Of a stretch of 64,000 nucleotides of DNA, positions 30,844 through 64,000 are shown one piece after another; the stretch's first letter is position 1, and each line of letters opens with the position of its first letter. The notes beneath the pieces were generated by a model. It ran no database searches. It was given only the letters and a program-made list of their open reading frames with translations, and was not told the origin of the DNA. The stretch covers positions 192,303 to 256,302 of the forward strand of contig NIVC01000302.1 of the NCBI GenBank assembly GCA_002269645.1, written 5' to 3'. Source of the DNA: Macrostomum lignano. Lineage: Eukaryota. Made by a program: the position numbers and the translations under genes.

Positions 30844-31711
30844 AGCCCTAAGGCTTATTATCAATTTTATCTCCAAATAAAATAGCTGGAAAAATATCAG
30901 AATAGCTTGAATAATTAAGAGAAGAAAATAGGATCAAAAAGTGAGTTTATTTAATTTGGTTTTATCTTGTTCCTATTTGTACTAAAAATTTTCCTTATTT
31001 CCTTATTGTTTGAAACAAGAATCTGACAATAATATATAGAATATACAAACTATTTTTAATATTTGTACAATATAACAGAATAGGCAGAACTTTATAAATA
31101 CAATTTTCTAAGAAATAGAAATGAAGCCCATCACAAGTATATGTATTATATAAATATGCTTAATTGATTATATAAAAAATAATAGAAGTCTAGAAATTCT
31201 TAGAAGGGAGATACAAGCTATGTATCTGCCTTGGAACTATAATACAGTGCAAATGAGTCTAAATAAAGACAGACAACAAGCAAACAATTTAATACTTTTA
31301 TAAAAAAACATTGTTTTATCTCACTTGATTAATACTTGATATTTATACTAGTAAGAACATATGTCATCTTATCTATAGCATATTTTGACATGCTCTAAAA
31401 CTGGTCCAGCTAAATATTAGCAGTGATTATGGTAGACAAAATGTCAATTTTCAAAAAACAATCTGTAGGTTTTCTAACAAAGCAAATAGAATTTTTTACA
31501 CAAATAGAATATATATACAATTTCTGCTTAGTTTAAATATCATGCCAAAAAGGCATAGGCAACTTAGCACTGTTCCTACAACTTAGCAGGCTTATATCTA
31601 GACAAAAAAGCCACAAAACCAAGACAAGAGGACTTATTGACTAAAATTCCCCAGCTGACTGTATTGTTTCTTTCAGCCAGCCAATATCACTATTAAGGTT
31701 GAAGCCTCCGC

Positions 31712-61300: not shown

Positions 61301-64000
61301 GTCTGTCTGTCTGTCTGTCTGTCTGTCTGTCTGTCTGTCTGTGTGTCTGTCTGTGTGTCTGTCTGTCTGTCTGTCTGTGTGTCTGTCTGTCTGTCTGTCT
61401 GTCTGTCTGTGTGTCTGTCTGTGTGTCTGTCTGTCTGTCTGTCTGTCTGTCTGTCTGTCTGTCTGTCTGTCTGTCTGTCTGTCTGTCTGTCTGTCTGTGT
61501 GTCTGTCTGTCTGTCTGTCTGTGTGTCTGTCTGTGTGTCTGTCTGTCTGTCTGTCTGTCTGTCTGTCTGTGTCTGTCTGTCTGTCTGTCTGTCTGTCTGT
61601 CTGTCTGTCTGTCTGTCTGTCTGTCTGTCTGTCTGTCTGTCTGTCTGTCTGTCTGTCTGTCTGTCTGTCTGTCTGTCTGTCTGTCTGTCTGTCTGTCTGT
61701 CTGTCTGTCTGTCTGTCTGTCTGTCTGTGTGTCTGTCTGTGTGTCTGTCTGTCTGTCTGTCTGTGTGTCTGTCTGTCTGTCTGTCTGTCTGTCTGTGTGT
61801 CTGTCTGTGTGTCTGTCTGTCTGTCTGTCTGTCTGTCTGTCTGTCTGTCTGTCTGTCTGTCTGTCTGTCTGTCTGTCTGTCTGTCTGTCTGTCTGTCTGT
61901 CTGTCTGTGTGTCTGTCTGTGTGTCTGTCTGTCTGTCTGTCTGTCTGTGTGTCTGTCTGTGTGTCTGTCTGTCTGTCTGTCTGTCTGTCTGTCTGTCTGT
62001 CTGTCTGTCTGTCTGTCTGTCTGTCTGTTTGTCTGTCTGTGTGTCTGTCTGTCTGTCTGTCTGTCTGTCTGTCTGTCTGTCTGTCTGTCTGTCTGTCTGT
62101 CTGTCTGTCTGTCTGTCTGTCTGTCTGTCTGTCTGTCTGTCTGTCTGTCTGTCTGTCTGTCTGTCTGTGTGTCTGTCTGTGTGTCTGTCTGTCTGTCTGT
62201 CTGTGTGTCTGTCTGTCTGTCTGTCTGTCTGTCTGTGTGTCTGTCTGTGTGTCTGTCTGTCTGTCTGTCTGTCTGTCTGTCTGTCTGTCTGTCTGTCTGT
62301 CTGTCTGTCTGTCTGTCTGTCTGTCTGTCTGTCTGTCTGTCTGTCTGTGTGTCTGTCTGTGTGTCTGTCTGTCTGTCTGTCTGTCTGTCTGTTTGTCTGT
62401 CTGTCTGTCTGTCTGTCTGTCTGTCTGTCTGTCTCTGTCTGTCTGTCCCTGTCTGTCTGTCCCTGTCTGTCTGTCTGTCTGTCTGTCTGTCTGTCTGTCT
62501 GTCTGTCTGTCTGTCTCTGTCTGTCTGTCTGTCTGTCTGTCTGCCTGTCTGTCTGTCTGTCTGTCTGTCTGTCTGTCTGTCTGTCTGTCTGTCTGTCTGT
62601 CTGTCTGTCTGTCTGTCTGTCTGTCTTAGTGTCTGTCTGTCTGTGTCTGTCTGTCTGTCTGTTTGCCTTTTTATTCATCTATAATGGCTGTCTTATTGCC
62701 AGACAAAATAATCCGAGCAAGTGCACCCCGCACCCTCAGACCAGCCAGCCCTACGACGGCAATTCCCTGGACACGGCCCTGGCTCTGCAGGCCAGCTTGG
62801 AAGCCAACATGGGCGGCACGGAGATCCTTCGCCCTCTGCAGTGGCTATTCGGCGGCGGCTGCGACAATACGTCAGTGGCTGTGAAGCGTTCCGTGGTGCT
62901 CATCACCGATGGCGAGGTGTCCAACGTGCAGGCGGTGAAGGATCTGGTTCAGGCTAATTGCTCCAGCGGAGCCTGCCGGGTGCACACAGTCGGCATCGGT
63001 CACGGCGCCTCCACCGCTCTGGTCAAAGGCGTGGCCAGGGTTGGTCGCGGCCAAGCCGAATTTGTCCGGGACAACGATGCCGCCCAGCTGAGGCGGGCCG
63101 TGGTCGGCCTTTTGAAGACCAACCGGCTGGAGCCGATTGACAATTTGCAGCTGCAGGTGACACTCTGGGAGATGCTCTGACCTCAGTCTTCATTCCACCC
63201 GAGTCTCTGAGCTCCCAGTCTGAATTCCACCCGAGTCTCTGAGCTCCCAGTCTTCATTCCACCCGAGTCTCTGAGCTCCTAGTCTGAATTCCACCCGAGT
63301 CTCTGAGCTCCCAGTCTGAATTCCCTCCTCCCGACTCTGAGCTCCCAGTCTGAATTCCCTCCTCCCGACTCTGAGCTCCCAGCCTGAATTCCCTCCTCCC
63401 GACTCTGTGCTCCCAGTCTGAATTCCCTCCCCCCGACTCTGAGCTCCCAGTCTGAATTCCCTCCCCCCGACTCTGAGCTCCCAGTCTGAATTCCCTCCCC
63501 CCGACTCTGAGCTCCCAGCCTGAATTCCCTCCCCAGACTCTGAGCTCCCAGCCTGAATTCCCTCCCCCGACTCTGAGCTCCCAGTCTGAATTCCCTCCCC
63601 CGACTCTGAGCTCCCAGCCTGAATTCCCTCCCCAGACTCTGAGCTCCCAGTCTAAATTCCCTCCCCCGACTCTGAGCTCCCAGCCTGAAGTCCCTCCCCA
63701 GACTCTGAGCTCCCAGTCTAAATTCCCTCCCCCGACTCTGAGCTCCCAGTCTGAATTCCCTCCCCCGAATCTGAGCTCCCAGTCTGAATTCCCTCCCCCG
63801 ACTCTGAGCTCCCAGTCTGAATTCCCTCCCCCCGACTCTGAGCTCCCAGTCTGAATTCCCTCCCCCCCGACTCTGAGCTCCCAGTCTAAATTCCCTCCCC
63901 CCGACTCTGAGCTCCCAGTCTGAATTCCCTCCCCCCGACTCTGAGCTCTATCTACTTCGAAGCAGCTGAGATTGCCACCCCGTGTCCCACAGGTGACCCT
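58318..64000 (+). CDS. VWA5A: VIT plus VWA domain protein, VWA5A-like (5' part; continues beyond the window)
   Basis: Exons 58318-58794, 59763-60347, 62740-63156 and 63993-end. VIT domain ([33 protein letters not shown]...[10 protein letters not shown]); VWA MIDAS motif [14 protein letters not shown]; FNVISFGS; [12 protein letters not shown]; [11 protein letters not shown]; [25 protein letters not shown]. Confidence 0.9.
58840..59680 (+). repeat. About 32-34-bp C-rich minisatellite in VWA5A intron 1
   Basis: Unit CCCTCCCCTGATCCTTCAGTATCCTCTGCTG(T/C). Confidence 0.95.
60362..62660 (+). repeat. (TCTG/TGTG)n tetranucleotide array filling VWA5A intron 2
   Basis: About 2.3 kb, starting about 14 nt after the donor. 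Confidence 0.97.
63185..63948 (+). repeat. About 33-bp minisatellite in VWA5A intron 3
   Basis: Unit CTCTGAGCTCCCAGTCTGAATTCCCTCCCCCCGA. Confidence 0.95.

Follow-up and report, generated by a model that had tools for sequence, protein, structure and literature searches.

The window analysed here is a 64,000-nucleotide (nt) stretch of the Macrostomum lignano genome (GenBank NIVC01000302.1:192303-256302; assembly GCA_002269645.1, equivalent to Mlig_3_7; contig coordinate = window coordinate + 192302). Its + strand carries, in this order, ATAD5-like, CTNNBL1, a hAT transposase, MSH2 and a gene with VIT and VWA domains (VWA5A-like). We favour reading the cluster as two adjacent two-gene spliced leader (SL) operons, ATAD5-like>CTNNBL1 and MSH2>VWA5A-like, and put the probability of this reading at roughly 0.5. 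The short gaps inside the two pairs contain no splice donor, and we infer that they are intercistronic regions which resolve a common precursor. In each pair, RNA polymerase II would transcribe both genes into one precursor. The upstream message would be cleaved and polyadenylated at an AATAAA (36228 and 57150, respectively), and the downstream message would be freed by splicing the 35-nt SL onto a donor-less acceptor some 75-130 unique nt further on. A minisatellite would have expanded within each intercistronic gap, and the long CTNNBL1-MSH2 spacer would separate the two units rather than join them.

A collinear gene cluster in three copies

An initial annotation of the window had placed the four named genes head-to-tail on the + strand, and this was borne out by domain and PDB matches and by exact GenBank models. 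The spliced models of CTNNBL1 (599 amino acids, aa), MSH2 (927/932 aa) and the hAT transposase (756 aa) were letter-identical to PAA85852.1, PAA85854.1 and PAA85853.1, respectively, and CTNNBL1 exon 1 and MSH2 matched M. lignano UniProt entries over long identical stretches. No opposite-strand gene lies between members of the cluster; in the window copy the same-strand hAT gene separates CTNNBL1 from MSH2. The features, all on the + strand, are as follows.

30844-31676, +: proximal upstream region of ATAD5-like, ending in a TTTCAG acceptor, with candidate donors at 30941 and 31351.
31677-36250, +: ATAD5-like gene, exons 31677-32677 and 34795 to about 36250.
36251-36581, +: intercistronic region 1, with a 31-nt minisatellite at 36253-36452, about 131 nt of unique sequence, no donor and a TTGCAG end.
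36582-42914, +: CTNNBL1 coding region, exons 36582-37335, 37929-38335, 40755-41146 and 42668-42914.
42959-46010 (3052 bp), +: hAT transposon, 42951-46018 with its target duplications, recognised by its terminal inverted repeats (TIRs), duplication and empty sites.
43106-43117, +: AATAAA with the consensus donor GTAAGA immediately after it, in the left end of the hAT element.
43303-45724, +: hAT transposase gene, exons ending at 44090, 44367 and 45724, ATG at 43313.
46019-49726, +: spacer before MSH2, with minisatellites at 46094-46742 (24-mer) and 47253-49552 (22-mer).
49727-57172, +: MSH2 gene, seven exons, ATG at 49744, TAA at 56789-91, AATAAA at 57150.
57173-58312, +: intercistronic region 3, with minisatellites at 57225-57327 and 57345-58263, about 75-100 nt of unique sequence, no donor and an ATGCAG end.
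58313-64000, +: VWA5A-like gene (VIT and VWA domains), ATG at 58318, running off the window.

Two further collinear copies of the cluster were found, one inverted on the same contig (L001, ~300-324 kb) and one on NIVC01000768.1 (L002/L005). Outside repeats the copies are 93-98% identical, and gene order and acceptors are conserved across all three. Conservation of individual spacer segments is uninformative because there the three copies are 97-100% identical.

Splice acceptors and evidence for leader addition

The initial annotation built on flatworm SL trans-splicing and polycistronic clusters, and for M. lignano both are published: there is a single 35-nt spliced leader, CGGTCTCTTACTGCGAAGACTCAATTTATTGCATG, which ends in ATG, and the trans-splice acceptor motif is [T/C]TNCAG (PMC8629364). 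About 30% of M. lignano genes are trans-spliced and about 15% have been assigned to operons (PMC8629364).

The acceptor AGs of the four genes lie at 31675-6 (TTTCAG), 36580-1 (TTGCAG), 49725-6 (TTCCAG) and 58311-2 (ATGCAG), within 2 nt of the positions first proposed (31674, 36579, ~49724 and 58310). First exons start at 31677 (ATAD5-like), 36582 (CTNNBL1), 49727 (MSH2) and 58313 (VWA5A-like). Three of the four acceptors fit the motif, with that of VWA5A-like deviating at the first motif position. The motif occurs at a density of 0.0028 per nt in unique + strand sequence, at which the probability of a motif within 40 nt at each of three start sites is ~1e-3.

A stronger argument than these motif statistics is the coincidence of the acceptors with annotated 5'-partial coding sequence (CDS) starts. 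These fall at 36582 for CTNNBL1, 49729 for MSH2 (ASLSSM) and 58312 for VWA5A-like (AAMYCL), and the VWA5A-like CDS of L005 starts at the equivalent of 58315 (AMYCL), so that 5'-partial starts lie no more than 3 nt from acceptors in up to three locus copies. A 5'-partial reading frame opens at the first in-frame codon of its transcript; the annotated transcripts therefore start at most 3 nt from the acceptors. This is as expected if transcripts were cut at SL peaks. In the published annotation, RNA-seq reads were assembled into transcription units (TUs), which were clustered at 95% identity to give the name prefix and subsequently divided into genes at the SL and poly(A) sites mapped by experiment (PMC5730564). 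Taken together, the CTNNBL1, MSH2 and VWA5A-like acceptors are supported as probable genuine SL sites.

In a scan for the donor consensus GT[AG]AG, none was found before the CTNNBL1 and VWA5A-like acceptors back to the preceding stop codon. The MSH2 acceptor has a donor, gag/GTGAGA (49679), 47 nt upstream, and the ATAD5-like acceptor has two candidates within 740 nt (30941 and 31351). The acceptors had initially been described as unpaired-looking, which in the strict sense holds for CTNNBL1 and VWA5A-like. An alternative VWA5A-like acceptor at 58266 (TTACAG, fitting the motif and placing the SL ATG in frame) was rejected, as the annotated CDSs start at 58312/58315.

The leader AUG is out of frame in ATAD5-like, MSH2 and VWA5A-like, where it would open overlapping upstream open reading frames (uORFs) of 28, 30 and 25 codons, and also in the hAT transposase (uORF of ~7 codons). 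First exons of these four genes begin with C, which puts a C at +4 and gives the leader AUG a weak context. The CTNNBL1 exon begins with G, and CTNNBL1 is the sole cistron predicted to use the SL AUG.

In L005 (9985-10001, corresponding to window 49721-49737) two neighbouring substitutions (ccag to catg) have abolished the MSH2 acceptor. The annotated MSH2 start of that copy is moved ~9 nt downstream and adjoins the next AG, a shift that looks like natural acceptor hopping.

The start codon of CTNNBL1

CTNNBL1 was identified by Pfam PF08216 on three of its exons (E 1e-49, 1e-44 and 5e-33). Its first codon, GAC (36582), follows straight after TTGCAG, and no in-frame ATG was found upstream of the exon back to the stop at 36483. 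CTNNBL1 thus lacks a genomic ATG, and its initiator methionine would therefore come from the ATG of the leader. Judged by its genomic sequence, the gene would be untranslatable without the leader AUG. Joined to the SL ATG the exon reads MDITEVLSYKP, which aligns with the start of the homologue P0005 (MEVGELMAFKP); the human CTNNBL1 N-terminus is MDVGELLSYQP. The GenBank protein PAA85852.1 (599 aa) is marked 'partial' and begins with the D encoded at 36582.

Gaps between the genes and co-transcription

M. lignano operons have been defined operationally as adjacent genes of one orientation, uninterrupted by any opposite-strand transcript, with an SL trans-spliced downstream gene and an intergenic distance of <1 kb after subtraction of repeats and transposons (PMC8629364). 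Repeat-subtracted distances between trans-spliced neighbours are bimodal, with one mode near 100 nt and a second at kb scale (PMC8629364).

The distance from the ATAD5-like stop to the CTNNBL1 exon was 584 nt, including 200 nt of minisatellite; the gap had first been estimated at ~585 bp. From the CTNNBL1 stop to the MSH2 acceptor we measured 6812 nt, made up of 3052 nt of hAT and 2990 nt of tandem repeat (together 89%) and leaving 762 nt of unique sequence. The MSH2 stop and the VWA5A-like acceptor are 1521 nt apart, of which 1019 nt (67%) is tandem repeat. The earlier description of these two gaps as mostly transposon and minisatellite was thus accurate. Counted from the poly(A) signal, the repeat-adjusted gaps shrink to ~131 nt (ATAD5-like>CTNNBL1) and ~75-100 nt (MSH2>VWA5A-like). 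In the hAT-free copies the CTNNBL1>MSH2 spacer is 2833 and 3058 nt long, with 749 and 802 nt unique, and contains neither AATAAA nor ATTAAA from stop codon to acceptor. With repeats subtracted, each of the three gaps is shorter than the 1 kb of the published threshold.

Gene names were also used as evidence on co-transcription. A name of the form MligNNNNNN.gN might be read as 'gene N of one TU'; we rejected this, since the prefix denotes a TU cluster at 95% identity. Genes g1, g3 and g4 are therefore copies of one gene, and a common prefix carries information only where the genes bearing it are unrelated. At L002, ATAD5-like (Mlig001294g4) and CTNNBL1 (Mlig001294g5) are unrelated genes with a common prefix; one assembled TU therefore contained both. 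At all three loci MSH2 has a TU cluster of its own, Mlig028898 (g1-g3). The MSH2>VWA5A-like layout of AATAAA, minisatellite and donor-free acceptor is kept in L005.

The spacer directly before MSH2 (46019-49726) has unique pieces of 75, 510 and 174 nt. A TATAAAA at 49609-15 is followed ~65 nt later by the donor gag/GTGAGA and then by the TTCCAG acceptor (49721-6), an order compatible with a putative promoter and short 5' exon belonging to MSH2 itself. The 'hybrid' operons of Caenorhabditis elegans have internal promoters and offer a model for such a possible MSH2 promoter.

Two operons, one or none

The main rival to two two-gene operons is one long operon, as the initial annotation had proposed, in which a promoter upstream of ATAD5-like would drive a precursor running through VWA5A-like (and through hAT in this copy) that is resolved by SL addition at each acceptor. 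If transcription crosses the 3.7 kb minisatellite-rich spacer into MSH2, all of the genes make up one operon. This is a possible reading, which we hold only tentatively. Its genes all share a strand, and no gene of the opposite orientation interrupts the row; SL trans-splicing is annotated or inferred for each of the downstream genes, and all repeat-adjusted gaps are below the 1 kb of the published definition, whose authors argue that repeats inflate gaps within true operons and break RNA-seq TUs (PMC8629364). As the hAT-free spacers have no AATAAA or ATTAAA, CTNNBL1 3'-end formation could be near the MSH2 acceptor, and the CTNNBL1 TU does continue into hAT. Several observations nevertheless speak for separating MSH2 from the genes before it. 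Its TU cluster is its own in every copy, the raw spacer is 2.8-3.1 kb even without hAT, and in the window copy it also includes a poly(A) signal and an entire expressed gene. The donor 47 nt before the MSH2 acceptor, lying after TATAAAA, means that a long precursor would favour cis-splicing over SL addition. MSH2 is present on the complete published list of 357 stringent neoblast clusters, whereas CTNNBL1, ATAD5 and VWA5A were not found on that list by symbol or name. Four-gene operons are moreover a small minority in M. lignano, where two-gene operons account for 75% and three-gene operons for 18% (PMC8629364). Of the two arrangements, a pair of two-gene operons is somewhat more likely than one four-gene operon. 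The initial proposal is supported in part, among other things by the ATAD5-like/CTNNBL1 TU shared at L002 and by gaps that are sub-kilobase once repeats are subtracted; the separate TU cluster of MSH2 does not agree with it.

Each gene could instead have its own promoter and short outron and be trans-spliced as a monocistronic message, with the adjacency incidental and the common TU names the product of read-through or overlapping coverage. Most SL trans-spliced M. lignano genes do lie outside operons, ~60% being monocistronic (PMC8629364), and StringTie/TACO units are able to merge neighbouring genes (PMC5730564). Chimeric models from the ML2 assembly at this locus are plainly artefactual, the largest being a 2198-aa product that runs from FUT8 to VWA5A-like and includes the antisense of a nested gene. 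Against the reading without an operon stand the ~131 and ~75-100 nt of non-repeat sequence between poly(A) signals and acceptors, which leave little room for a promoter plus outron. These sizes match the published ~100-nt operon mode and not the kb-scale one, and a TU prefix is common to both sides at two junctions. An absence of any operon is thus improbable.

The preferred reading of two operons has its own difficulties. In the window the ATAD5-like (Mlig001294) and CTNNBL1 (Mlig011045) prefixes differ, and a common TU name stands for continuous same-strand RNA-seq coverage, which is no proof of a single promoter. Transcript 5' ends were taken from 5'-partial CDS starts, which are 0-3 nt off the acceptors. 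Spacing is the single argument for pairing MSH2 with VWA5A-like, and the raw gap past the poly(A) site there is 1.1 kb. The CTNNBL1-MSH2 gap, at ~750-800 nt after repeat adjustment, also satisfies the <1 kb rule; the split into two operons is therefore a judgement and not a demonstration. Extension of a transcription unit upstream to the NRF1-like gene is unlikely because of the 5.3-8.5 kb transposon-littered spacer in between.

The functional theme put forward for the cluster in the initial annotation, genome maintenance and splicing, was not sustained: VWA5A-like has no link to repair, ATAD5-like lacks the Walker A lysine and only MSH2 fits. The accompanying suggestion of stem-cell expression is supported for MSH2, a published stringent neoblast gene; CTNNBL1, ATAD5 and VWA5A do not appear on that list by symbol or name. 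Among neoblast genes generally, 85% are trans-spliced, and M. lignano operons are enriched in conserved genes (PMC8629364).

The hAT transposon behind CTNNBL1

The hAT element has perfect TIRs of 14 bp (CATAGTTGCCACCC) and is flanked at 42951-58 and 46011-18 by a target duplication, also perfect, of 8 bp (GTGCGCTT). The element begins 44 nt after the CTNNBL1 stop codon, in the CTNNBL1 3' untranslated region (UTR), and only in the window copy. L001, L002 and L005 have an empty site with a single GTGCGCTT, so that the element is present in one of three locus copies. The insertion appears recent. Its transposase is intact (755 aa from the methionine, three exons) with a C-terminal Dimer_Tnp_hAT domain, and no relatives at 90% identity or above were found in the protein collection; the element is low-copy. 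The element had been taken for gap filler, and it does occupy 3052 nt of the spacer; it is, however, also an intact, annotated and expressed gene found in one copy only.

In GenBank the transposase is PAA85853.1 (BOX15_Mlig011045g2, 'partial'), with a 5'-partial CDS start at 43310. Ten nt separate the transposase ATG from a TTTCAG acceptor whose last base is 43302, and the annotated CDS starts 8 nt after that acceptor. From the CTNNBL1 stop to this acceptor there is a single canonical poly(A) signal, the AATAAA at 43106, which lies 148 nt inside the element; an ATTAAA occurs further downstream at 44421, in a transposase intron. The window copies of CTNNBL1 (Mlig011045g1) and the transposase (Mlig011045g2) have a common TU prefix; the CTNNBL1 TU of the window copy therefore continues into the transposon. 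The CTNNBL1 message of this copy probably ends inside the element.

These features might make the hAT element a passenger of the operon, with its own AATAAA terminating CTNNBL1 and its transposase expressed from host read-through and released by SL addition, no promoter of its own being needed. The TU name held in common with CTNNBL1, the 5'-partial CDS near an acceptor and the intact, low-copy state of the element speak for this, and the acceptor is ~190 nt downstream of the AATAAA. A consensus donor, GTAAGA, abuts that AATAAA, however, and the acceptor could equally belong to a cis-spliced 5' UTR intron of a self-promoted or read-through transcript. We thus regard the passenger role as rather unlikely.

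Individual genes

ATAD5-like has its ATG at 31712, its TAG at 35995-7 and an AATAAA at 36228, and its reading frame is complete with or without the leader. In GenBank it is PAA85851.1 (BOX15_Mlig001294g1), and the window protein matches PAA85860.1. The best PDB match was human ATAD5 (E 2.5e-6), followed by Ctf18 and RFC1; a match to AAA_lid_RFC1 was weak. Its Walker A motif (window 32440-32480, residues ~250-258) is shortened, with GP---GRS in place of the GPTGVGKT of human ATAD5, and contains no lysine. ATPase competence of the predicted protein is doubtful, and it may bind PCNA/RFC partners without hydrolysing ATP. The last exon (35377-35745) contains a 51-bp coding minisatellite with a 17-aa unit, LPSNQTGQSLSGxGSAE. 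About seven units are present in the genome (722 aa), three in the GenBank protein (655 aa) and seven in the ML2 model; either copy-number variation or an annotated protein derived from a collapsed transcript would account for the discrepancy.

The proximal upstream region (30844-31676) may serve the first cistron as promoter, outron or 5' UTR intron. Within the 5.7 kb AT-rich spacer, this region alone aligns with the paralogous copy L001 at 97%; the parts at 26712-26882 and 28139-30844 do not align. This spacer also contains an element resembling a miniature inverted-repeat transposable element (27076-27465) with TIRs of ~55 nt, built from overlapping arms of 38 and 29 nt that are 95% and 86% complementary.

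The MSH2 protein has MutS domains I-V, and its best PDB match was human MSH2 (E 8e-165, against ~1e-41 for MSH6/MSH3). PAA85854.1 (932 aa, 'partial') is an exact match to our model. The predicted mRNA, from 49727 to ~20 nt past the AATAAA at 57150, is 3182 nt long, or 3217 nt with the 35-nt leader; a published de novo MSH2 transcript, RNA1509_7318, is 3239 nt long and is flagged TRANSSPLICED. Intron 3 of MSH2 is filled by a 40-nt minisatellite (52218-52478), and its acceptor (52463) is the CTCAG of the last unit.

In the VWA5A-like protein an N-terminal VIT domain is followed by a VWA domain. Reconstruction of the gene from L005 gave 899 aa, which is the annotated length, and was not an exact match. 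One of its introns holds a 2.3 kb (GTCT)n array (60363-62662).

Surrounding sequence and gene models

Tandem repeats make up 38% of the window, and most introns are largely single minisatellite arrays. Related 22- and 24-nt units, ATCTATAGGAGATTAGCTGATC and TATCTATAGGGGATTAGCGGATTA, recur in a CTNNBL1 intron (41244-42510) and an MSH2 intron (51573-51736); the remaining arrays are mutually unrelated. Rfam and tRNA scans of the window found nothing, and no SL RNA gene was found in it. At 2431-2443, 13 nt (AATTTATTGCATG) agree exactly with the 3' end of the leader, and no donor site comes after them. The score of this match barely exceeds that of the strongest random matches in the window, which leaves an SL relic or a coincidence as the explanation.

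Upstream of the cluster, a + strand gene at 18983-26015 encodes two Nrf1-type DNA-binding domains (annotated product 545 aa). Its large intron contains a minus-strand 316-aa reading frame (22162-23112) with weak concanavalin/LamG similarity, which appears to be a nested gene. FUT8 (10460-14547) precedes this + strand gene. On NIVC01000302.1 the cluster copies stand tail to tail, at ~192-259 kb forward (L003/L004) and ~300-324 kb reverse (L001), with few genes between them as suggested by protein accession numbering. Either the segment has been duplicated in inverted orientation, or the assembly has joined haplotypes or homeologues. In L001 (14388-18865) CTNNBL1 is intact, with all four exons 99-100% identical, and carries no annotated CDS.

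We discounted chimeric UniProt models from the ML2 assembly (P0035, P0038, P0045 = A0A1I8GA01 and P0048 = A0A1I8FYJ3) as evidence of polycistrony. The ATAD5-like/CTNNBL1 fusion among the ML2 models uses a poor GTTCGA donor. Several of the fusions splice precisely into SL acceptors, and they illustrate how gene finders are misled by SL operons. The searched parts of the supplementary tables of PMC5816591 and PMC5730564 hold no entries for the cluster genes.

Significance and comparison with known systems

The arrangement is already known genome-wide for M. lignano and this locus was implicit in the GenBank annotation, so that it is one more example. Although of little importance itself, it is a useful teaching and test case. 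Its first instructive feature is a cistron that depends on the leader AUG. Since one of the three copies has a 3 kb transposon between its cistrons and the others do not, the locus also offers a natural experiment on the amount of intercistronic DNA that an SL operon can accommodate. The junctions of the transposon are copy-specific tags, and reads can therefore be assigned unambiguously in a highly duplicated genome. Finally, at the CTNNBL1>MSH2 spacer the published operational rule and the other evidence disagree; under a 'repeat-adjusted <1 kb' rule, two possible operons can be joined into one.

The closest known system is the set of SL operons described in M. lignano (Wudarski et al. 2017, PMC5730564; Ustyantsev & Berezikov 2021, PMC8629364), with which the locus has in common the organism, the leader, the acceptor motif, genes on one strand and trans-spliced downstream genes. 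Gaps of ~100 nt after repeat adjustment, repeat-inflated distances, conserved genes and a neoblast-enriched member (MSH2) are likewise found in both. Nothing differs in kind; particular to this locus are the cistron without a start codon, the full-length hAT in one of three copies and the long spacer.

The SL2-type operons of C. elegans also couple 3'-end formation to trans-splicing across intercistronic regions of ~100 nt (PMC12582326). By contrast, M. lignano has a single SL and no specialised SL2-like leader, which places the locus outside the SL2-type class despite a similar way of working; its intercistronic regions here carry kb-scale minisatellites, and its SL can donate a start codon. 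For the latter there is a precedent in Schistosoma mansoni, where more than 40 cDNAs were reported to need the leader AUG as initiator (Cheng et al. 2006, as cited in PMC9851317). CTNNBL1 belongs to the same class of SL-AUG initiation, whilst the host is a free-living macrostomid and the SL AUG of the other cistrons is out of frame. The transposon, for its part, resembles other members of the hAT superfamily in its 8-bp duplication, short TIRs, transposase with a dimerisation domain and empty sites in other copies. It differs in lying in the 3' UTR of a cistron, within that gene's annotated TU, and in carrying an AATAAA followed by a TTTCAG acceptor 10 nt before its ATG.

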